NCBI GenBank assembly: GCA_946965045.2
Contig: OX337234.1
Span: 558,001 to 622,000 of the forward strand
DNA: 64,000 nucleotides
From: Epithemia pelagica
Taxonomy: Eukaryota; Protista; Bacillariophyta
Direction of reading: 5' to 3'
The first letter of the stretch is position 1; each line of letters opens with the position of its first letter. The notes beneath the pieces are model-generated. The model saw nothing but the letters and a program-made list of their open reading frames with translations. It was not told the origin of the DNA and ran no database searches. The position numbers and the translations under genes are program-made. Below, piece after piece: positions 47,745 through 63,305 of this stretch.

Positions 47745-50700
47745 ATGAGATGCTCAGTGACGAAGCATGAGGTCGTTTTGGTGTTGTTGTTGGTTTGGTC
47801 GTTGCCTCATTTTGTTTTCTGCGTGGATTTTGTGGCCTCCAACAACATTCTTTCGAGTCTTGTTCAGCAGAACGCCTGTCAACTTCCAACTGCCATATCA
47901 CGCAAGCCTTTCCAGACGGATGTGAAATTTTTTTTTAGACAAGATGGAGTTTTTGGTGAGCGGGACAGACCATGAAAGAGTTGACAGGCAGACCACTGGT
48001 GCCAAAAAACTGGGTGTGCTTAATCGGGAGTCACAAGAAACAACACACATACTCGTAGAGCACTCATCATGAACACAATGGGAAAGTCTACCATGGTGAG
48101 TCATCCTCTGGCCTCCAGGAGGATGCATTCTTGTCCTCTGTGTCTGTTGTTGTTGGTGGTGGATTGTTGCGTGTTGCGAACCTCTGTCCATTCCTGTCCT
48201 TTTTGCCTCGTCCTTTGGCTCGTCTGCTTTTGGTTCCTCTTTTCGTTTCGGTCTTTGATTTTAGTGCACCGCGCTAGTTTTTCTGTAGGTGCTACTTTTT
48301 GTCGGTGCTACTTTTTCTTTTCCCGGGCTATTTTAAATGTATACACTAGAATAAAAAATCGTCGTACAATAAATTTTTGGGCTTATCTATTTTGGGGTGT
48401 GAGTAGGGAAAGGCACGATGAGGAGTGATAAAGGTAGCGTGTTAAGTCTCACGTCTTCGCATTCTTGGTTGCCCCTCATCTATGCCCCTCTTTCGTCGAG
48501 ACATTGTTGTAGAAGTACGAGTAGGTCACGTCACTGGCATTACTTCGGCCAGACTTGACGTGTCAAAATGTGACGAAATAGTGACTTCGTGTAATGTAAT
48601 GTAAAATGTGATGAGGTACTGTAGTCAAACTTGTGACGGAGTATAGGTATTCCCCAATAACATGTATTTCTCATGCCCACATCCCACCTGCTGCACTGTC
48701 TTCGTAAAAGACTTTATCCTCTTCGATTGTGTGGCAGACAGCAACGGTTCCAGGTGCTCAGGTCCGTATGTAGGTGTGTTGCAAGCCGTTTAGGTTTTCG
48801 CTCTTTTTCTGACTGCAGTGCTTGTCTTGTGCTTGTTTTCTTCTCTCCCTGCACTCTGCCTATTCTCATTCTCTAGTATTGCACTTGCTCCGGGATTCTC
48901 AACCCTTTCACGTTTTCAGATTTCAGATTCCAAGTCTCGACCGTTCAAACCTTGTTGGCCTATATTGCCAAACGCAATGCCCAAAATCCAAATTGTCAAT
49001 ATCCACCACCAAATGGCACCAACAACGACAAGAACCTCTTTGATCAATGGGTGGACGACTTGGAGCCTCTCTTTGCCGAATATCAAACCATCAACAACAC
49101 CATGGCCGACAAGGACTCGGACCATCCACCCTTTTGTTGGATTCCCATTCTCTTGTATGCCGATGTCCAATCCAATTTGCAAACCTTGTCGCACGACATG
49201 CTGCTAACAACAAATGATTTGGCACCGGCCTTGATAGTCGATTTGGAAGCGCATTATCCACCCTTGAATCAACCACGACCCTTGCAGGAGGTATTCGAAA
49301 AGAACCCACTGGAGAATACGACGGACAGCAGCAGCAGCAGTAGTAGTAGCAGTACCCAAACGTGGTTTCTTAGCATGGAATTGGACTCGTCCGTCTATCA
49401 TCATTCCATTTTGACGGTGCAGGATGAACCTCTGGACTATGATTTGTCGTCGTCATCGCCATGGCCCGTGTTGGATCACGTGCAATTGATTCATCATGAC
49501 TTGAATGTCTCCCTCCCACCCGTCTCGCTGGAACAAGACAATTCGGATCCCATGGGCACCACCAACACCACCAGCAATCACACCACGACCGAGACGACTC
49601 CTTCGGTCCGCGATGCCTTGTACAATACGACCCTGACCGCCTTGGCGAATTTGGCCCAACAAGCGCAAATTCACGATCCTTCCGTGGCCCGTCAGACGGC
49701 CGCCATGCCCGTGCAACGACACGGCAATTATCGACGGTGCAAGGCCGGACCGTGTGAATCGGCCAGTTTGTACCTCGATGCCCTCCAATGGTATACCCAG
49801 GCCGACGTGAGTTTTGGCAATAGTGGAGGATATCGCGGCAAGGGATGGCCGGCGGCTTTGGGCGGAACCAATTCGTCGTCGGGCATTCGCATTTCCAATT
49901 TGTGGGATTTGTTGCCCTTTCCCAATACCGTGTGTACCGGTGTCATGACGGGCGTCTCCTTGTTTCGAGCCTTTAATTATTCCATTGCCATGGCTACTTT
50001 TGAGGGACACAATACCGATTTGGGCGGACTGTTGCTCCAAGTTTCGGGCCTGCGATTGACGTACAAGACCCAACTCCATCGTGGCAGGGGACGACGAAAA
50101 GGTGGACCGGGCAATAGCACCACTCTGTCGACGGCTGCCTCGTGGCAACGGACGCGATTGATTCAAATGGAAGTCTGGAACAAGGTCACGCAACAATTTG
50201 AACCACTGCAGCGATTGCAATTGTACAAATTTGCCACGGATAGTTACATGTGTACCGGACACGAACAATTTCGAGACTTTTGGAGTCGAGCGCAATTGCA
50301 ATTTCCTGGAGAAGTACCGGGAACCTTGGATCCCTCGGCCGTCTTGCAACAAGAAATTGTCGCCGATTACTTGTGGACCAATTATGGGAGTCTCAATCAG
50401 ACCTATCAACCCACGGTCCAAGATCGCATGATCAATGATACCACGGCCACGGCATCGCAACTCTGGAACTTTGTCCAAACGCCCAATTCCTGTGATGGCT
50501 CTTTGGAATATTGGAATGCCGAAACCTTTTCCTGTGTATCCTGTCCTCCCCAACCCACCTCGGGTGTTGTCTTTCTCAAGGAAAGCTTGGAATTGGAAGG
50601 ACAAGTGGGAGGCCGCAATGTCGTGGTTGTTCGGCCAGCCGTACGGAGTGACGATGAATTTAAGGCGCCGTCAACGAGCACCACGATTTCCTCAACGGCG

Positions 50701-50812
50701 ACCATTTCACTCGTCAATACCTTGTCGCACAATGTGACGGTCATTACCAAGTCGCTTCCCTTTTGGTTAAACATTTCCGTGTCCAAACAGCCCACCAATG
50801 CGCAGCAGCAGC

Positions 50813-50847
<35 letters not shown>

Positions 50848-52560
50848 CCAGTATCATCGATTCCCGATGGGTCGTTTACGACGTCCACCTTTGCATCGAC
50901 CAATACGACGGATTCTCCTGGCAATCGAGGCAATCCACGCAACTACAATGAGGAGGATCCATCACTTTCCAACTCGACGGGAAATGTCTTGATGCCTGAT
51001 ATGGCACCGGGTCAAGAAGTCACCCTAGATGTCCAAGTGGATTGGGCCGTGTTGGAACCAGGAACGGCGACGGGGTCGGCCATTTTTGGTTTCTTGTTGG
51101 GAACGGATGAAGGTTCCAGTAGTAGTGAGAGTGCGTGTGTTCGTCCCGATGCCAAATTTGATTTGATTGTACGGGTCAATCACCCGGAAAATCTCAATCA
51201 ACTGGGAAATGTTCGCTACTTTGGATGGATTGGAGCGGCCATTATTATTCTCACGGCCCTGTGTTCCATTGCCTGGGTCGTTATGAATCGTCAAACCAGG
51301 ATTGTACGAACCTTGCAACCACTCTTTTTAGTCACCATTTCCGTGGGCGTGTTGGTCATGGGAAGTGCCTTGATTCCACTGGGATGGGACGATGAAATTG
51401 CCTCGGCGGAAGCTTGTGGAAGAGCCTGTATGGCCTTTCCGTGGCTGTTGAGTATGGGGTTTACCATTGCCATGTCGGCTCTCTTTTCCAAACTTTGGAG
51501 AATCAACAAACTCTTTCAAAGCGCCCATGATTTACGACGAATTCAAGTTCGGGAAAAGGATGTCCTGGGTCCTTTTGCAGTCTTGTTTGGGCTCAACTTT
51601 GTCGCTCTCTTGCTGTGGACCTTGTTGGATCCACTGCAATGGGAACGGAGCGAAATCGATGGCCGACCAAGCAGTCACAATCAAAGTTATGGCGCCTGTC
51701 GTAGTACGCATGGTCCGGCTTCGACGGCCATGATTGTCGTGGTGGGTGTGGTGAATGTATCGGCCTTTTGCGTGGCCTGTTATCAAGCCTTTTGTGCCCG
51801 CAATGTCAGTGACGAATTTAGTGAAAGCCGCAGTTTGGGCGTGGCCCTGTTCAGTTGGGTCCAACTCTTGCTCGTGGGTGTCCCCGTCCTCTTTTTGATT
51901 GACGAAGACAATCCTTCGGCTCGATACTTTATCACGGCCGGCTTGACCTTTGCCTTTTGCATGTCCATGTTGTTGCTCATTTACGTGCCCATTTTCATTC
52001 AAAAGAAAAAGGCCGAACGACGAGCCAAAGAACAGGCGCATCCCATCAGCTCGTATTGTCGACCCCGGATCTTGTCCCATTCCTCTTCGGAAGATTCGCA
52101 TAGCAGTGGCATGGCGTCGACGGCGCGATTGGGTTCTTCGGGAAGCCTCTCCTCCGCAAACACGGCTAGTCACATGCGCAACAGCAATCCCAACAGTCAC
52201 CACCTTCCCGGGAGCCATCGGAGTATTCAATTTTCCATCAACAATGTGGGAAGCACGAGAATATCGGGCATGGCCATGGATATGAAGCAATATGCCAACG
52301 ATTTGTTAAAGCGGTTACCCTCCTTGAATGAAGGAAGCTTATCGGACGATGACTCCCAACAAGAAGAAGAAGATGTGGATCATTCGTTGAATAATAGACG
52401 AACTTCCGAAGTCTTTTCTTCCGAAGGACAGTATTCCAAGGAATCTACCGTTACGAATCATAGCCACGCTTCGTCGTCCGAGAATCCGAACCAGCAGGAT
52501 GGTAGTGGTGATGATGATACTGTCGATGAATATCTACCTGATTCGGTGTTAAAGATATGA
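47745..52560 (+). CDS. Class C (GABA-B-like, 7tm_3) GPCR with an extracellular 5'-nucleotidase C-terminal-like domain; 5' exon(s) tentative
   Basis: Main exon 48920-52560 follows a polypyrimidine tract and CAG. Nucleotidase-C motifs DAL..YTQADVSFGNSGGYRG, LWDLLPFPN..CTGVMTG, LLQVSGLRLTY; 7TM motifs QPLFL, SALFSKLWRINKLF, DEFSES. Candidate signal-peptide exon 47745-47955 (MRCSVTKHEVVLVLLLVWSLPHFVFC, donor GTGAGC). Confidence 0.82.
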
Positions 52561-53631
52561 ACACACACTGTTGTTGGAGAGCAATCACAGATCCAAACTA
52601 GAAGAAGTGTGTCGCTGTCGACCAATAATGATTCTTCATCCGCCATTTGGTTGCAATGGCGCAATACCATGGCCACCTTTGGTCTCAATTGTCTGTTGCA
52701 TGTGGCATGGTGGGGCCAGGTGAGTGCAGGAACCTGGGCCTGGGAGTACAGGTGGGTGTTGCTCGTGGCACCCGCACTCGGCTTGCCCTTGGACAATCAT
52801 GCCTTGATTCCCTTGTTTCAGCTTTCCAAGAAATACGAACAAGACGACACCTGTCCTATGCAAACTGTGGGGTGGTCACAACGCCGACTCTTGTATCATG
52901 GAACGAGTTTGGTCGCCTTACAAGCCATGGCTGCTTGGTTGATGCCCTTGTTTTTGAAAGCTCAAGACAGGCCCTCTTGCAAACAGGACGCTTTTCCAAG
53001 TAGGTTTGGATGGACAGAGAATCAATCATATCTGGTTCCAACCCCAATAATTGGACAGGATTGGTTCAAAGCCTCTTGTGCGTCTGATGGAAAGCAGTGC
53101 ACTCGTCGACGCCAAGACGAGTGTGGCTCTTTGTGGTTTCATTGTTTCGTGCAAGGGTTGTGCAAGCGAAGGATGGGTCAAGACTGACGGCCTAATCCAG
53201 CGCTATCTCTGCGGGACTTAATGGCGTACTGACTGTCGGTTGGAAGAGTTGGAACAATGCAGAACCGTCGCCGAGACTCCTCACGAGCAATGACGTTGTC
53301 CGATAGGTGCCAGTTATGTCGCATGTCGTTCGCTCTATCGTTACGAGGTGGTCCTGAGGGTTTATTATACTGGATTTGGGAGGTTTGGGCAGCATTGGGT
53401 CAACTCAAGGACGATAAGTGCTAGGCCGGACGGCGACAGCTATTACCTAGTTTTACCTCAAGACCTTGTACTGGTACTCCTATGGGTAGGTCTTTTGTTG
53501 CTCCCGCGAAGCGTCCGTCCGTCGCTCGTTTCAAGGCATTGCCCAAAATGAACTCATCACAGCAGTAAGCAGCGTTCTTGTATGTTGAGGGGCCTAGAAG
53601 CTGCAGCAGCACAGCAACAAGAGCAAAAAAC

Positions 53632-55424
53632 ATAGACGATAGACCCCCAAAGAACCGCTCTTTCGTTGCTGCGAGTGACGGTTCTTCAAATGATGTCTCC
53701 GTCAGTGACAGTGACATTGAGAGGTTTGTTGCAGAAAAACCCCACCTTGCCGGCTTGCCCAAGGAGACCATTAGGCAAATATTGATCGTCAAACAAAATG
53801 CGATACAAGATAGGATACAAACTGGGATACAAATTGGACGTGAGCTTTATCGACAAGAAACTATCAACACCCGCCCCCAACCCAACCACTTAGTGGCTCC
53901 TCCGAAGGTGTGCGAAACGACAGCATCCTCATTGGACATCTCAACGCCTGAAAACCTAAAAAAGAAGCGAAAATACGACTCTGAGATTCTTCCGCAACAA
54001 CTCTACGAAAACGCTTTTGTTCACGTCGAAACTTATTTCGATTTTGACTCTGGCTGTGCTCAAGCCATCGACAGCAACCAATTGCCTTCAACCCAAGCAA
54101 TTCAATGCTTTGCCGGAGGTGATTTCTTCGAATGTAGTTTGGCTCTTTGCCGTGCCTTTGGCAAAGAGATGATTCGTCACGTTTCGGACGTGGATGTGCA
54201 GCATCAGGTACCGATTTCCCCGAAGGAGGGAAAAGAGCAAGACGTGGACATTGCTTTCTTTTGGCAGCCCGAGAGTGCGTCTGCGCCACGAGTGTATGCA
54301 TTGCTGGAATACAGACCCATTTCGGACTTTTCGTCGTATGAATCTCAAGCAAGCGCTTATGGGACTGATTTAATGAGCATTACCAATCGTCCAACCATTG
54401 TCATGCAAGCTCATGGTACGAAGCTTGAGTCCATGAATTTTCGGGTCTTTGGTATTGTTCCTGCAAGGCTGACAACCGATACTGCAGACGAGTTGCAAGA
54501 AAACGCCGCGCGACATCGTAAGGGTTTACTCTACGAGGGCTACGGACACCATGCCTTTGCTGGTATTGTCAACGGACTTGCAGAGTGTGCTAAGACTTTC
54601 CGCCACTCGGCCTTGCAGTCTACGACCGACTTCAATATCCGGGGCAAGATCAGCTCCACTGCATCAGTTCGTGAAATCCGCAAAAATACCGGACTTTCAA
54701 AGCCCCACTTCTTCAAGTCGTATGATTATCGGCTTCGGGAACACACGCCAAAAACCGATCGCCGCCATGTCAATTTGGTCTATTGATTCACGAGTTCATT
54801 GACAGGGACGCAAAACACTTTTGTTTAGGGAAACACCTTGAGGTTGTGGTTATGGAGTTCTTCGAACGAGAGAAGGGAAAGAATGAATAGTACTCGGACT
54901 TTCCGGCGAAAAATCTTGCCTCCATTCTACGCGATTTGGCCAGACTTCACCGAGAAAAAGGATATGTGCATGGAGATGTTCGGCTCTTCAATATGCTTCT
55001 TCATGTTGGAAAGCTAGTGGACTTTGATCATGCTCGAAAGGAAGGACAGTCATACGCAAATACCCTGCGTCAACTCTGTGTGGACGGGAAACGAGCCCAG
55101 GCGGTGGACGCAGCGATTGAGAATGGGAACTTGGCCGCTTTGAAAATGGCACCGGAGCACGATTGGGAGTCCATGAAATGCGTTCTGGAAAAACTTAGTC
55201 CCACAGCGGATTCGCCAAGAGAATTTTGTGACTGGTGGAATGCCACAGTTCCCGCGCTTGACTCCAGCGATGTGCTCCAACTCGAAACAACGCTTTCGGA
55301 TCGTTTTTCCAGTGACGAGTGTCGCCTCGAATGCTGTGCTGAAATTCAGAATTACCTAAAAGGTAGGGCGGGCGAGACATGAGAAGCGAGGGACAGTCCA
55401 AAGAAAGCAGCAAAGGGATCATAG
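53632..55424 (+). pseudogene. REase-like + protein-kinase-like (Crinkler-type) gene, copy A, inactivated
   Basis: Motifs DVDIAFF...ALLEYR, FKSYDYR, HGDVRLFNML and KLVDFD. Relative to copy B: start ATG->ATA (53632), +2 frameshift at ~54778, TGG->TAG (54888) and CGA->TGA (55380). Confidence 0.8.
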
Positions 55425-55931
55425 GTTCATAAGCCAAGGCAGCCTCTAGAGCCTACTGGAGAACATATTAGGAGTAGGAGTAGGAGTTGTGAGTACCTTG
55501 GTTGTATTTCCTACCTACTCCTAGAGATAACCTAGAAGAGATCGACCTCCACAGAATTGAAACATGGTGTACAATAATATGAAGATGCGATCAATACCAG
55601 AACGTCCGCTGGCGTGTGGTCTTGATCGCGAAGGGGCTCGCTCCCTAAAGAAGCAATGTTTTGGTCTTGATCGATGCCCTCCGCACGCATGCATCGCCAG
55701 TAAAAATGGTGCGCGGAACAAATGGGACCATGACGAGAGATCTTTGGTGTTGAAATCGCCGGAACAGACTCCAAACGAACAACAGTGTACACGACACTCT
55801 CGACGACAACTCCCTCCAAGAAGAACCACAAGAGCAGTGTGTTCTACCACGTTTCGGGAGCCCAGAGACGAATCATTGTAAGACGTCGGTGAATTGCAGA
55901 TTCAATGTTTCTTCCAAAAACTATCTATACA

Positions 55932-58782
55932 ATGAGTCGTCTTTTCTGGATGCGGTGGACGGCTCTCGGGTCGTTGCTGCTACTGGGAAGAGCCATTCAT
56001 GGACGACGACAAGACAAGGAACAACAACAAGAACAAGAAACATCCGATTCTGTAACCGGTGTTGATCGAATCGACCAACACATTGTCCATATGGATGGAA
56101 GTATTGATGAGAAGCAGGAAGCCTTGTATTCCAAGGAACAACAGCCCCTGTTTCTGGAAGACGACCAAACCAACAAAGGAGCCATGTCGTCGTCGTCGTC
56201 TTTGGGTGTAGCCGATCCTCCCTGTGAGTTTTATCTGTCCACCAATCATTCCTGGTTGATTGCCGGACAGGACATGCCCTTGGCCAATGAAGTGGTATTT
56301 TGGGACTCGTGGTCTCATCATCATCATGACCTGGTGATTCCCTTTGAGCCACACACCAATCGTGCATGGCCTCGATGGGGACGCCATCATTACTTGTGGT
56401 AAGTTCCACACAAACCCCATTCGTTTTGGTTTCGACCAGCCGTGACCGAAGGACCCGTCTTGCCCTGTCATGCCACCCAGTACAATCTCGTACGTGCCGA
56501 AATCACAACCACGAACCATTCGAGTAATTACAGTACGGTCCACAACCACACAACACTGCCAGCCGCTCGAAAAATCCAATGGCGGACCCGTCGTCCCATT
56601 GCCGCAGGAGAGCGCTTGTTCCAACAATGTGATCCTCGCATTGAAGGAGAGGATGCCAGTCCTCTACTCTTTCACAACAACAACAACAACAACGTCCCTA
56701 CAATAACCACAAAGCACAACAACAACAACTCGTCTCATCGGGTGGAGAAGAAGGAAGCTGTGTGTCTGGACACGGTGACCTTGGAGAATCCCCACCCACA
56801 CACTACTACTACAAATAACAATACTACCGTATTTTTCGGTTTCCTGTACCCCCGGAATGTTAACTTTTTTGTTAGGGGGGTACAGGACTCCGACAATTTT
56901 AATTAATTTTTTTTAAGATTCCATACGGATAGTACAATTGACTTGATAGTAAATTTCATTATCAACATCGGAGTTGTAGAGAAGGGTTGGTCGCACTATT
57001 CCAGCTAGGGGAAAGACCGTGGTGCCGTAATACCCATCAGGTTGTATCTCTTGTTTCTCCTCTTTGATTTACTCCCATTTAATGTCAGTCAGTGCGATAG
57101 AAAGCTTGGAGCGTGAGGATTGTGGGGGTAACCCTAAAACCAGGAAAGAGCCTACAGAAGAAAAGTTACGATACCATGCACTGATTGTGGGGGAGGGGGG
57201 TACACGACTAGGGGGGGTACACGAAACCGAAAAATACGGTAGTGAGGAGCACAACCAGTCGACAGGTGTCTGGGCCAAGCGGGGGTTGCGACAAGGCAGT
57301 GTGGTGGCCGTCGGAGATGTCCTGCACCTGCATCGGGCCGAAGTATGGAATCCGCGCACACAAACCAATCAACCCATCATGGCGTATTGTTATGGCCATG
57401 CCCAAACCAATGTCTTGCTCTTGCCCTATGCTCCCATGTTCCATGTCATTCCCTCCTGTGCCAGCTGGACGACGACAGGGACAGCAACCACCACCAACAA
57501 CAACAAGACTGCATCATCCTCGTTTCGGTTGCGGCACGCCAATGTACGATTGGAATGGAATCTCAATCGTTCGGTCGAGGAATTGTTTGACCGTCCCTCG
57601 GATCAATTGTTTGCCGCACGGGAAGTGTCGGGTTTGTCGTGGAAATTGGTAGCGACGCGAGACATTGCACGGGGAGACCCTCTTTGTTTGGACTATGAGC
57701 ATGCTCCTACGAATCATGGTGGTCCAACGGAACGATGGGTCCCCTACGACTTGTTTCCCCCCACGTGGTTGAATCAAGAACAACGAACGCCGGTGGATCC
57801 CGTCACGCACCAGTTTCCATTCCCCACGGTCCATCTTCCACCACTGACACCTGGTCAAGTGCATCCCGTCGAATGGTCCGATAATACGAACCAAGCCGTG
57901 TCGTCACACATGTTTCGAGTCGGATTGCCACCCTCGTTACGGACGGCCATTTACAACTGGACCCAAGAGGTTGGTATTTTGGAACGCACGCAACAGTACG
58001 TGGCCGACAAGGTCTTGGGAAACGAGCCGCTCCGGGACGAACACGAGTTTCAATTATTGTCGGATGGATCGTGGTGGCGGGCTCGACCCTTTTATGGACA
58101 TGCCCGTGCCAATTTGTACATTGTCATGCTGGAAGATGACGCCGCGACGCAACGAGCCTTACAGCAATGGAGTCGTCATGGATTGGATACGGTGTTGCAA
58201 GGCATGGGCCGGTATTTTGGATTCCACGAATTGACCTGTTATGAACCTGCCTTGATTGTCGTGAATCATTGCATTGAAAGCAATTTGCATACCGATTCCA
58301 ACAATCCCGCCTTGTTCAATTTGTTACTCCCCCTCCAACAAGTGGAGAACGATCCGCATGCCGAACTCTTGGTGGGTGAGGATTTGCCCCCCGATGGAAG
58401 CATGACCACGGCCAATTACACCTTGCCCGTGGCACCCTACACGTACGAACCCACTGTGGCCCTGTTGGTGGGCGGCCAGGGCGTTCATGCCACGGCACCC
58501 GCGGACTATCGCGATGGAACCGTTCGGTCCCCCACGTCGCAGCGCATCGTCTTTTCCCTCTTTGTCCGAGACTTTACTCAAGCCGCCGCCAATGAGGAGG
58601 AGGACGACGACGAAGAAGACGAACAAAATTATTTGGTGGAAGAAGAAGAACATGATCCAGACGACGAGGACCCAGAGGACGACGATACGTTCGAGGATCG
58701 TCGATATGTCCATTGGAAGCGCAACGACCCATTGGTATCCGTCCAACATCCCCTCGTGGTGGTGGTAGACGACGAGGCATAG
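55932..58782 (+). pseudogene. Signal-peptide SET-like + SET-like + 2OG-Fe(II) oxygenase-like protein; in-frame TAA at 56400 and MITE insertion
   Basis: Signal-like MSRLFWMRWTALGSLLLLGRAIHG; SET-like GPVLPCHATQYNL..TRRPIAAGERLF; second SET-like YCYGH..LLLPY..ANVRLEW..VATRDIARGDPLCLDY; oxygenase-like HTD (58288), GVHAT (58486) and QRIVFS. Removing 56827-57241 fuses the frames perfectly. Confidence 0.7.
56827..57239. mobile_element. 413-bp MITE, Tc1/mariner superfamily (Tc2/pogo-like CCGTA ends)
   Basis: 27-bp TIRs CCGTATTTTTCGGTTTC(C/G)TGTACCCCC (26/27 match; 56827-56853 and 57213-57239), TA on both sides (56825-26 and 57240-41), AT-rich interior. Confidence 0.92.
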
Positions 58783-59278
58783 TCAATACCAAATCGTGTG
58801 ACTGTGATGGGATGGTGTAGTGGAAGACTTTTGTCCCCATGAGGCTCTCCATCGAATAGTACTATTGGACACTCGGATTGCCACGACGCGTTTGTGCGTG
58901 GTTGTGGAACCAAAAGGAGGACGATTCTTCATCTTCCAGTGTTATTATGGAACAATGGTTGACAAAGCGGGCGTCTGGCATGTACGCACACACACACACA
59001 TACATACACATGCGTGTGTGCGTGAGTGTTCCACAACCGACAGTACTGGAACGCGTTCGTGTCAACGAGTCCATGACAGAAGCAATCCGGGGTCCGTCGT
59101 TTTGGTTTCCAGGAATCAGGCCTTTTCCTCCAAAGAATCATAGAAAGTTGCTTCAGGACTCAGGACTGCACAATTTAGGATCCTCTTTTTTCCGGAATGG
59201 CTCTAGTTGTTTGTTTGTTTGCTAGACGGTTGTTTTGTTTGGGGCACTGGTCGTCATGAAAGGCTTATTGTTTTTTCT

Positions 59279-60400
59279 CTACGGATTCGTCTTGCTCTTT
59301 TTCGAGCAACGGATTGTTGATGTGTGAGTGTGTGTCGTGTCGGGGGGTCGTTTTCGTGGGCCTCCTTGTTCTTGTTCGTCTTCTTGGGATACGACACTGG
59401 ACAAGAATGGTCCTGGTGGTGGTGGTGGTTGTCGTCGTTGTTGTGCCAAATGGAGATGGACCAAAGCAGTCACAAACTGTTCCTCGTCGTGGTATCGTCC
59501 TTGTCGTTGTGCTGGTCGTCCATTATTTGTACTACTAGGCTGGTCTCTCTGGTTATTGTGATGAATGGGAGTTTGGAGCAACAAGAGACCAATCATGGCC
59601 GACGACACATTTTCCATTCCAGTTTTTTCAAATGGTGGTGTGGTGAAACGAGGAGGAGGAGTAGCCTTGGAAGGAATGGGTGGTTGTGGTTGGGACGTTA
59701 GTTTTATTTTTTGCAACTGCTGTTGGACATGGGTCCGTACGGCGTCTTGGCTCATAATGGGTGCTTGCACATATTTGACCAAGAGTTTGTCCCAGCTGGC
59801 CGATTTGCTCCCCTGTGCTTGAACCATCCACTGATGCAAGGTGTCGGAGCTAAGTTTGTCTTTTTGCAACAATCGATGCAAGGTTTCCCGAACCGTATTG
59901 TGAGGTTGTTTCATCATGAGTGTTGTGGAGGTTGGGGGTGTAGTCGTGGTGGTAGGATCATCGGAGGATAACGACAAGGAGGCCGCGAGACTTTGATCGA
60001 CTTGAGCGGCTTGGGCGGGTGTCAAAAAGGTGGTACGGGTAGCGGCCATGCCAAAGAGACTGCGAGGATAATGATGGGGCGCAATGTACAGATAGCGCTT
60101 GTCCGTGACGAGCGACGAGGAGGAGGAGGATCCATGGGATCTTTTGGTGACGCCCTCCAATTGAAATTGATGAATGGCCGCTTCGCGATGCAAGGTCAAT
60201 TTCAGACTGGATTCGTTGCGTTCCAAACCAATAAAGCGGCCCGCCCAGGGATCCTGCGTGTTGTTGTTCTTTTTGGTGTTCTTGTGGTTGTGGTCGGTAG
60301 TGGTGGTGTGCGCCGAAGCACATTGCAAAATTTGTTGGCGCAGTTCACGACATTCCTTCCAATTGCAAATGCAAACGGCTCCAAAATTATTGGCCGCCAT
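59279..60400 (-). CDS. Hypothetical protein (N-terminal C.CNW..C / YIAPHHYP / YVQAP block, low-complexity tail)
   Basis: 373-aa ATG ORF with protein-like composition. No function recognised. Confidence 0.6.
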   Translation of the reverse strand: MAANNFGAVCICNWKECRELRQQILQCASAHTTTTDHNHKNTKKNNNTQDPWAGRFIGLERNESSLKLTLHREAAIHQFQLEGVTKRSHGSSSSSSLVTDKRYLYIAPHHYPRSLFGMAATRTTFLTPAQAAQVDQSLAASLSLSSDDPTTTTTPPTSTTLMMKQPHNTVRETLHRLLQKDKLSSDTLHQWMVQAQGSKSASWDKLLVKYVQAPIMSQDAVRTHVQQQLQKIKLTSQPQPPIPSKATPPPRFTTPPFEKTGMENVSSAMIGLLLLQTPIHHNNQRDQPSSTNNGRPAQRQGRYHDEEQFVTALVHLHLAQQRRQPPPPPGPFLSSVVSQEDEQEQGGPRKRPPDTTHTHTSTIRCSKKSKTNP

Positions 60401-60757
60401 TGTGTGGGAGAGAACAGTGTTCTACCTGATTATTACTCTGGGAAAGTTGGACGGTGACTCGGACGAGCAGTCTTTTGGCTCTTATTGTTTCTGTTGTTGT
60501 TGTTGCGATGAGAACGGTGGCGCTGTGGACTGCGATTTCTGAGCGTCTGTGGATTGGAGCTTGTTTCAAAGACCTAAAGGTATTGTTTCTTTAAACGCTG
60601 GGAACTATTCTGTGAGAAAGTTCCCTGTGTGTGCCGCTCTCGTTTGTGTCGATCCTTAGCTTTTTAGTGTAGGCTCTACTCCTTGGTGATGCATGGAAGT
60701 AGACTAGAGGTGTTGCAAACGGGGTTTGCGGTTCCTTCACTGCCTTGGCTTATGAAC

Positions 60758-63065
60758 CTATGATCCCTTTGCTGGTTTCTTTGGACTGTCCCTCGCTTCT
60801 CGTGCCTCGCCCGCTCCACCTTTTAGGTAGTTATTAATTTCAGCACAGCATTCGAGGCGACACTCGTCAGTGGAAAAACGATCCGAAAGCTTTTTTTCGA
60901 GTTGGAGCACATCACTAGAGTCAAGCGGGGGAACTGTGGCATTCCACCAGTCACAAAATTCTCTTGGCGAATCCGCTGTGGGAGTCAGTTTTTCCAGAAC
61001 GGATTTCATTGACTCCCAATCGTGCTCTGGCGCCATTTTCAAAGCTGCCAAGTTCCCTTTCTCGATCGCTTCGTCCACCGCCTGGGCTCGTTTCCCGTCC
61101 ACACAGAGTTGACGCAGGGTATTTGCGTATGGCTGTCCTTCCTTTCAAGCATGATCAAAGTCCACAAGCTTTCCCACATGAAGAAGCATATTGAAGAGCC
61201 GAACATCTCCATGCACATATCCTTTTTCTCGGTGAAGTTTTTCCAAATCGCGTAGAATGGAGGCAAGATTTCTCGCCGGAAAGTCCGAGTGCCATTCATT
61301 CTTTCCCTTCTCTTGTTCGAAGAACTGCATAACCACAACCTCAAGGTGTTTCCCTAAACAAAAGTGTTTTGCGTCCCTGTCAATGAACTCGTGAATCAAT
61401 TCCAAATTGACATGGCGACGATCGTTTTTTGGCGTGTTTTCTCGAAGCCGATAATCATACGACTTGAAGAAGACGGGCTGTGGCAATCCGGTACTTTTGC
61501 GGATTTCACGAACCGATGCAGTGGAGCTGATCTTGCCCCGGATATTGAAGTCTATTGTAGACTGTATATTGAAGTCTGTAGGAGACTGCTTAGCCAAGTG
61601 GCGAAAAGTCTTTGCACACTCTGCAAGTCCGTTGACAATACCAGCAAAGGCACGGTGTCCGTAGCCCTCGTAGAGTAAAGCCTTACGATGTCGCGCGGTG
61701 TTTTCTTGCAACTCGTTTGCAGTATCGGTTGTCAGCCTTGCAGGAGCAATACCAAAGACCCGAAAATTCATGGACTCAAGCTTCGTACCATGAGCTTGCA
61801 TGACGATGGTTGGACGATTATCAATGGTCATTAAATCAGTCCCATAAACGCTTGCTTGAGATTCATAGGACGAAAATTCCGAATAGGGTTTGTATTCCAG
61901 CAATGCATACACTCGTGGAGCAGACGCACTCTTGGGCTGCCAAAAGAAAGCAATGTCCACGTCTTGCTCTTTTCCCTCGTTCGGGGAAATCGGTACCTGA
62001 TGCTGCACATCCACGTCCGAAACGTGACGAATTATCTCTTTGCCAAAGGCACGGCAAAGAGCCAAACTACATTCGAAGAAATCATCTCCGGCAAAGCATT
62101 GAATTGCTTGAGTTGAAGGCACTTGGTTGCTGTTGATGGCTTGAGCACAGCCAGAGACAAAATCAAAATAAGTTTCGACGTGAACAAAAGCGTTTTCGTA
62201 GAGTTGTTGCGGAAGAATCTCGGAGTCGTATTTTCGCTTCCTTTCTAGGATTTCAGGCGTCGAGATGTCCAATGAGGATGCCGTCGTTTCGCATACATTC
62301 GGAGGAGCCACTACGTAGTTGGGTTCGGGGCGGGTGTTGATATTTTTTTGTCGTTCAAGCTCACGTCCAACTCGTATCCCAGTTTGCATCGCATTTTGTG
62401 TGCGGATAAACATTTTCCTAATGATCTCCTTCGGCAAGCCGACAAGGTAGGGTTCTTCTGCAACAAACAAAACGAGCTTTTGATGTCGCTCAGGAGGAAC
62501 CTTTTCAGACCAACTGTCATATCCAGTCCTGCCGGCGCACCAGTTTCTCGGCTGGCGACCTTAAACAAATAGAAACTACGACATACACAACCCCGGTTCA
62601 CACTTAACGAAAAACTATCTTTTTCCTTAATCCATGTCCTGTTTCTATCCGGCACTCACAAACTTTTGGTCGCAGAACGGGGGGGGGTCGTTTTCTATTA
62701 CAAATACGAAAGCAATAGAAGACTAGAAACTCTCAGGAAACGACGCATTCGTATGTTTCATGAAGATATGTTGGGAACTTGGTCCTGAGTCCTGAGAGAT
62801 TTGGTCTTTTATTCCTGGAGATATGAGCGTTCAAAGTTAGACAGTCGGTTTTCAGGTCTTATATTTAACATGTAGGTTGTGTACAGTTTGGATCATAGTT
62901 GATGAAATAGTTTCGGGACGGCTGAGGATAGCGCGCGGGCCCGTTCGGTAACAAAAGCTCGTATTGCAACCTCTTTGTGTCACTGTCAGTGAAGGAGACA
63001 TCAGCATTTGAAGATCCGTCACTCGCAGCAGCGACAGAACGGTTCTTTGGGGGTCTATCGTCCAT
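60758..63065 (-). pseudogene. REase-like + protein-kinase-like gene, copy B, inactivated (inverted paralogue of copy A)
   Basis: ATG at 63065 (MDDRPPKNRS). A 499-bp insertion at 62468-62966, and TGA at 61145-61147 where copy A has CGA. LLEYK and HGDVRLFN motifs are intact. Homology with 53610-55442. Confidence 0.82.
62468..62966. mobile_element. 499-bp MITE-like insertion, superfamily unassigned
   Basis: Absent from paralogue A. 15-bp TIRs CAAAACGAGCTTTTG / CAAAAGCTCGTATTG (14/15 match). TSD imperfect (TTTG/GTTG on the minus strand). Confidence 0.75.
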
Positions 63066-63305
63066 GGTTCTTGTTCTTTGCGCTTCGGCCCGTCAAAATA
63101 CAAAAGAACAGCAACTTCCGGTAATGGACTCAAAACGTACGAAATCTTCCTACTTCTCAGAGTATCGTCACGATAAAACAACCGTTTTCATATTGCGTTA
63201 TCACACACCAATAGCTCTGATATGATCATATTAGATACAGATTCTTTCGATATGAGGCAAGCATCCCGAGTCACGGATGTCGGGGGACATTGTAGATGTC
63301 TTTTG

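Follow-up and report, generated by a model that had tools for sequence, protein, structure and literature searches.

An inactivated diatom gene for a SET-oxygenase fusion protein points to an undescribed family of candidate lysine hydroxylases of the secretory pathway

Towards the end of a 64,000-nucleotide stretch of the genome of the diatom Epithemia pelagica (contig OX337234.1, positions 558,001 to 622,000; the whole of this stretch is called the window below) lies what appears to be a recently inactivated gene, at 55932-58782 on the + strand, for a secretory protein with a signal peptide, two SET-like modules (SET1 and SET2) and a C-terminal domain that belongs to an undescribed family of 2-oxoglutarate (2OG)/Fe(II) oxygenases. 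In the intact relatives of this gene the oxygenase would act on lysine or methyl-lysine, and we put the probability of this reading, taken as a whole, at about 0.55. The first-pass annotation of the window had proposed that the region forms a single reading frame once an inserted miniature inverted-repeat transposable element (MITE) is removed, and this was confirmed in the sequence from the start codon (ATG 55932, with an alternative ATG at 55905) to the terminal TAG. The motifs HTD, GVHAT and QRIVFS and the ending VDDEA were likewise all found where that annotation had placed them: HTD is encoded at 58288-58296 (His 58288-58290, Asp 58294-58296), the His of GVHAT at 58486-58488 and the Arg of QRIVFS at 58543-58545, and the encoded C-terminus reads ...VVVDDEA before the TAG. 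The order of parts that it had suggested, signal-like peptide, SET-like, SET-like and 2OG/Fe(II) oxygenase, was also right as judged from profiles and structure models. These were needed for the SET and 2OG assignments because Pfam was silent on the window pieces: when the three pieces (split at the stop codon and at the MITE) were searched separately, none of them gave a SET or 2OG domain match at E<=1 in Pfam, and neither Pfam nor NCBIfam yielded a domain assignment of use for the window when run on its pieces and on the orthologues. The parts of the region are as follows.

55932-58782, + strand: former coding region, apparently now a pseudogene; one frame with the MITE set aside, collinear across both breaks with the intact proteins P0002 (869 residues) and P0003 (733 residues)
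55932-56003, + strand: signal-like peptide at the N-terminus; begins with charged residues and continues with the hydrophobic core TALGSLLLL and with RAIHG (Kyte-Doolittle 9-mer maximum 2.13)
56223-56630, + strand: SET1-like module, divergent, with Cys-His for Asn-His, split by the stop codon; from a Pfam SET match to the equivalent part of P0005 and from hhalign of SET1 with SET2
56400-56402, + strand: in-frame TAA at the site of a conserved Gln; from the homologue alignment, and likewise in a second contig
56827-57241, no strand assigned: MITE of 415 nucleotides, inserted where a variable linker joins SET1 to SET2; from terminal inverted repeats and a TA duplication, and present in both contigs
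57262-57726, + strand: SET2-like module with a predicted SET fold, Asn-His and three other family-invariant residues replaced; from a structure model of an orthologue and from profiles
57832-58593, + strand: predicted 2OG/Fe(II) oxygenase domain of an undescribed family; from an AlphaFold2 model and the family alignment
58594-58782, + strand: acidic C-terminal tail and TAG stop codon (58780-58782); from the sequence and the homologue alignment

The C-terminal domain was studied in an alignment (A2) of 109 full domain copies, in which the window copy stands first and supplies the residue numbers used here. H153, D155, H219 and R238 are retained in 102-105 of the 109 copies (94-96%) and all four are present in the window copy. 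H153, D155 and H219 would form the iron-binding triad; R238, which is conserved in 102 copies, may be the basic residue that binds the C5 carboxylate of 2OG, with another Arg, from the consensus motif DYR, as an alternative candidate. The AlphaFold2 model of the window's own domain (predicted local distance difference test, pLDDT, 89; predicted template modelling score, pTM, 0.89) places His-x-Asp after a long core strand, whereas the second His belongs to a late strand and R238 stands at the beginning of the last one; such a layout is usual for 2OG/Fe(II) oxygenases. The best 50 matches in a Foldseek search against the PDB were all 2OG/Fe(II) oxygenases, and VIA-align applied to the Foldseek matches gave Z scores of 12.7-11 with about 200 residues aligned (PrhA, SnoN, AsqJ, KanJ, CurA-Hal and BesD). 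When VIA-align was run on 48,161 chains without Foldseek, the top 50 were again nearly all 2OG oxygenases (Z 11.7-9.2), the exception being vaccinia C16, and a shape search of the ESM Atlas led to 2OG-FeII_Oxy_3, 2OG-FeII_Oxy_5 and PhyH clusters, most of them from bacteria and viruses. The domain had been predicted from the sequence to form the double-stranded beta-helix of a 2OG oxygenase; it is modelled so, with HxD...H...R conserved. At the level of sequence, no 2OG family was among the Pfam matches of the 109 domain copies and there was no convincing Pfam family for any copy, while a profile search of PDB sequences returned nothing for the whole-protein alignment and noise only for the oxygenase domain, with no oxygenase found. 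As the fold is clear and neither Pfam nor the PDB offers a sequence match, the family counts as undescribed, and the models lead us to regard the C-terminal domain as a new sequence family within the known 2OG/Fe(II) oxygenase superfamily.

Two further observations concern this domain. The first 65 positions of A2 show weak matches to SUMO-like sequences (E ~0.4), but these are probably noise because in the model this segment is matched to the N-terminal region of PhyH-like enzymes. A tblastn search of phage records with the oxygenase domain gave no match, which leaves the connection to cyanophages suggested by PMC2938197 unconfirmed.

The fold of the SET-like modules was assessed on an orthologue. 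The model of residues 60-385 of P0003 has a pLDDT of 86 and all 50 of its listed Foldseek matches are SET proteins or SET-type methyltransferases; SET2 in this model aligns with PFL0690c at Z 9.2 (110/110 residues) and with vSET at Z 8.7 (103/105). The SET2 profile of the wider family matches SET proteins in the PDB at E=1e-6, and Pfam SET E-values among the relatives go down to 1.8e-37. SET1 is more divergent, the Pfam SET match being significant only in P0005 (E=4.9e-6), and hhalign of SET1 with SET2 gives 58% probability and E=1e-4, the motifs of the two modules being lined up. Of the 16 aligned members, nearly all carry Cys-His for Asn-His in SET1 and Cys for the Tyr of the C-terminal motif. 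The SET2 module of the window carries Pro-Ser for Asn-His as well as Ala, Pro and Glu at three further positions that are invariant in the family, only the Tyr being kept, and neither module of the window clade has the full canonical set of SET residues (Asn-His plus the Tyr of ELxxDY). Across the family, 85 of the 111 copies of SET2 keep Asn-His and Tyr, as do 59 of the 80 copies found in one protein with the oxygenase; the set is not kept in the window copy or in P0002, P0003, P0005, P0006 and P0007. The degenerate Asn-His motif of SET2 had at first been taken as a sign of decay in the window copy, an interpretation that we abandon because a degenerate motif is typical of the clade, the closest relatives included. 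SET2 of the window's orthologous group probably does not methylate, and since both modules in this clade lack the canonical residues, a combined methyltransferase and hydroxylase activity is unlikely for this group. Of the original suggestion that a single enzyme installs both marks, the part that concerns the window clade is thus lost with the SET residues, whereas for relatives that combine a canonical SET with the oxygenase it survives as plausible.

The wider family was collected by searching a profile of the first alignment against 1.84 billion representatives, which gave 1323 representative clusters at E<=1e-3, and the best 150 representatives were split into modules with local hidden Markov models. 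On this basis they are composed as follows.

80 of the 150: SET module(s) and one to three oxygenase domains
53 of the 150: one, two or four oxygenase domains and nothing else (fragments among them)
17 of the 150: SET modules only

The oxygenase domain is accordingly met alone, in tandem (up to four copies), with a canonical SET and, once, with an ShK and a prolyl-hydroxylase-type domain. The last of these, the metagenomic P0137 (1133 residues), has the new oxygenase at 363-600, ShK at 814-849 and a 2OG-FeII_Oxy_3 domain of the prolyl-hydroxylase type at 1022-1122, that is, two different oxygenases in one secretory-type protein. Intact collinear relatives of the broken gene include P0002 from Epithemia clementina, the metagenomic P0003, a protein from a Bacillariaceae metagenome-assembled genome and others, so that the intact orthologues and related fusions which had been anticipated in other diatoms do exist; E. 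clementina and the Bacillariaceae genome are the only named sources, the remaining members coming from metagenomes and transcriptome assemblies. At an intact orthologous locus in another assembly (L003) a GTAAGT...CAG intron of 59 nucleotides (L003 4470-4528) lies directly before the His-x-Asp codons, and because of this intron the gene finder had split the orthologue into products of 492 and 161 residues; the gene itself is intact. BacSETs are also diatom SET proteins, described as diatom-specific and proposed to act on cell-wall proteins or polyamines; in Seminavis their expression goes together with that of cell-wall genes (bioRxiv 10.1101/2020.11.23.393678). The texts consulted make no mention of an oxygenase domain in them. 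The family described here, with its signal peptides, resembles the BacSETs in description, and the window clade differs from the BacSET type in being without the canonical SET residues.

Targeting was judged from the N-termini of the family. A strongly hydrophobic stretch (9-mer score of at least 2.2 within the first 45 residues) is present in 86 of the 141 members that start with Met, compared with 3 of 141 internal control stretches, and the window N-terminus, at 2.13, is comparable to the family. The hydrophobic N-termini are followed by Cys-rich polar stretches, and a simple pattern scan for the ASAF-type plastid motif found it in none of the 86. By eye, most family members are predicted to begin with a signal peptide of the endoplasmic reticulum (ER) type. 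The lack of a beta-helix model, the lack of a signal peptide or the absence of the fusion from other diatoms had been named beforehand as computable grounds for giving up the proposal, and none of the three was found.

Two lesions interrupt the window copy. The TAA at 56400-56402 aligns with a Gln that most homologues conserve, and a single C-to-T change in CAA would suffice to produce it. The insert at 56827-57241 is a TA-targeting MITE (Stowaway/Tc1-mariner-like): its ends are terminal inverted repeats of 27-31 nucleotides that are 97% complementary (56827-56853 and 57213-57239), with a chance expectation of 0 and no other occurrence within the window, and TA is found on both flanks (56825-56826 and 57240-57241). 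The SET-like modules are joined by a variable, low-complexity linker, and it is here that the MITE lies; its exact excision restores the reading frame (415 = 3n+1). All three window pieces are collinear, across both breaks, with homologues of 730-870 residues that were found by a search with the third piece, which argues for one former gene rather than a chance run of open reading frames. P0001, a gene-finder product of 566 residues with its start within the MITE, occurs on two contigs of assembly ERZ21939226. One of these, ctg1302l, contains the window; the other, ctg1199l, differs from the window by 2 substitutions across 55800-58900 and has both the TAA and the MITE. The earlier remark that the copy may be dead is thereby borne out, with the TAA on a conserved Gln and the MITE both present in both contigs. 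In addition, the window oxygenase matches 35 of the 52 well-conserved family columns as against 39-45 in the nearest orthologues, and little is left in it of the WxSNMH motif that these orthologues retain. From the sequence we judge the window copy to be a recently dead gene, broken in both assembled contigs.

We consider it very improbable that the copy still functions, either because the MITE is spliced as an intron or because a shorter protein (P0001) is made from the start inside it. It is true that an in-frame GT 56829 / AG 57245-57246 pair surrounds the MITE, and that there are two lesions only, with no frameshift and with the catalytic residues of the oxygenase retained. However, an intron that would remove the TAA was sought and rejected: GTAAGT at 56399 pairs either with frame-shifting acceptors (41, 53 and 82 nucleotides) or with a 126-nucleotide one that deletes conserved SET1 core, and since the TAA lies inside this core no in-frame splicing removes it without loss of conserved residues. 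A product that starts in the MITE would have neither the signal peptide nor SET1, and the oxygenase has lost several conserved positions, WxSNMH included. As a separate observation, the two contigs (loci L001 and L002) are ~5% divergent upstream of ~55700 (54081-55700) and differ by only 4 substitutions over the next 6 kb (55700-61782); such a sharp boundary would be expected after loss of heterozygosity, after gene conversion or after a recent duplication.

Lysines that are methylated, hydroxylated and then phosphorylated are central to silica precipitation by silaffins. It is established that diatom walls contain epsilon-N-trimethyl-delta-hydroxylysine and 3,4-dihydroxyproline, and in silaffin-1A the trimethyl-lysines are hydroxylated and phosphorylated (PMC4557024). 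In the literature searched no hydroxylase is named for the trimethyl-hydroxylysine or the dihydroxyproline of diatom walls, and no 2OG oxygenase is linked to diatom SET proteins or to diatom hydroxylysine. In the reading that we favour, the oxygenase would be the catalytic part in the intact relatives and would oxidise, most likely hydroxylate, side chains of proteins in the ER, the Golgi or the silica deposition vesicle. The recurrent fusion to domains of the lysine-methyltransferase type makes lysine or methyl-lysine the most likely target, which would fit the epsilon-N-trimethyl-delta-hydroxylysine of diatom cell-wall proteins, and where both activities are present they would share one target, the side chain of a lysine in proteins of the secretory pathway. 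In the window clade the oxygenase would be the sole catalyst, and the two SET-like modules, judged by their residues, would more probably bind lysine-rich peptides of the substrate than act as methyltransferases. It should be noted that the lysine or silaffin substrate and the delta-hydroxylation are suggested only by the fusion, by the signal peptides and by the fact that these are diatom proteins. A more specific version, in which the oxygenase is the missing protein-lysine delta-hydroxylase of biosilica, the canonical SET fusions are bifunctional epsilon-N-trimethyl-delta-hydroxylysine synthases and the SETs of the window clade have turned into substrate binders, is more tentative, and we would not at present bet on it.

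Several results weigh against a lysine target. The fold match singles out no substrate class, and the enzymes at its top (Z 11-12.7) are PhyH-like enzymes of small molecules; prolyl hydroxylases, at Z ~10, and the mimivirus lysyl hydroxylase, at Z 9.5, come below them. The latter was at rank 41 in the search of 48,161 chains, with 156 residues aligned, and collagen-type lysyl hydroxylase (PLOD/LH) is neither a sequence match nor the closest fold to the oxygenase domain. That both SET-like modules of the window clade are without the canonical residues weakens the link to methyl-lysine for that group. The signal peptides, moreover, were judged from hydrophobicity and by eye alone, by which they are of the classic ER type, often followed by a Pro-Val-Cys motif. 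The PhyH-like dioxygenases in question (PrhA, AsqJ, SnoN/SnoK, KanJ, EvdMO1, the CurA halogenase, BesD and human PHYH/PHYHD1) have the same fold as the window domain over ~190-200 of its 254 residues, but identity is 9-16% and there is no sequence match to Pfam PhyH (PF05721) or to any 2OG model; their substrates are small molecules and they work in the cytosol or peroxisome, whereas the window-type domain occurs in signal-peptide proteins and fused to SET. Collagen prolyl 4-hydroxylase (P4H), the algal and viral P4H and the PLOD and mimivirus lysyl hydroxylases are 2OG/Fe(II) protein oxygenases of the ER lumen, with structural Z scores of 9.3-10.5, but these secretory-pathway hydroxylases belong to another sequence family, are not fused to SET and match the structure less well than the PhyH-like enzymes do.

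The strongest competitor, which we regard as unlikely though worth keeping in mind, is that the target of the oxygenase is not lysine at all and that the SET part serves for docking. The substrate would then be proline (giving 3,4-dihydroxyproline), another residue, or a small molecule such as the long-chain polyamines. The best fold matches being small-molecule enzymes, the presence of prolyl hydroxylases at Z ~10, the combination of ShK with a P4H-type 2OG-FeII_Oxy_3 domain in P0137 and the occurrence of dihydroxyproline in diatom walls (PMC4557024) would all agree with this, as would the 53 of 150 representatives that have the oxygenase without a SET module. What tells against it is the recurrent fusion to domains of the lysine-methyltransferase type, 59 of 80 of which keep Asn-His and Tyr. 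Rather less probable is that the oxygenase demethylates N-methyl-lysine by hydroxylating the methyl group, in which case the SET fusions, present in 80 of the 150 representatives, would be writer-plus-eraser pairs that tune secretory proteins or polyamines. JmjC-family 2OG oxygenases do demethylate methyl-lysine, but the closest folds here are PhyH-like and prolyl-hydroxylase-like, with no JmjC protein in the best 50 of either fold search, and the trimethyl-hydroxylysine known from diatoms requires a C-hydroxylase. We give little credence to a role in modifying plastid Rubisco: the diatom large subunit bears trimethyl-lysine, 4-hydroxylysine and 3,4-dihydroxylysine (PMC9833100) and the family appears to be diatom-centred, but the hydrophobic N-termini lead into Cys-rich polar stretches with the ASAF-type motif in 0 of 86, and the fusion to ShK is typical of secretory proteins. 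Least probable of all, and hardly to be entertained, is a SET-oxygenase role in chromatin or transposition unrelated to the secretory pathway, since the protein and its orthologues have signal-like peptides and the neighbouring genes are GPCR-like (G-protein-coupled receptor-like) and duplicated kinase-like genes with no transposase.

On account of these neighbours, a position of the broken gene inside a transposon was also rejected. On the + strand, an open reading frame at 48952-52560 (1202 residues) encodes a 5'-nucleotidase C-terminal domain and a class-C GPCR (7tm_3), with Pfam E-values of 1.6e-16 and 7.6e-34. A large inverted duplication (53619-55442 and 60740-63078), in pieces of 834, 661 and 163 nucleotides that are 91-95% complementary, brackets a core of 5.3 kb with the broken gene and the open reading frame at 59279-60400 on the - strand; the arms encode a RIO/APH kinase-like open reading frame (Pfam RIO1 E=6e-5). 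The frame at 59279-60400, which adjoins the broken gene, would give a low-complexity, Thr/Pro-rich product of 373 residues and has no Pfam match.

The window copy is itself an ordinary pseudogene, although it shows cleanly how a nonsense mutation together with a MITE has recently inactivated a gene, and its value lies in the family to which it points. That family is large and apparently diatom-centred, carries predicted signal peptides and pairs SET with a previously unrecognised oxygenase, and its intact members are plausible candidates for hydroxylases of methylated lysines in the proteins of the silica shell. It thereby supplies concrete candidate genes and makes an old question, which enzyme hydroxylates the lysines of silaffins, testable.

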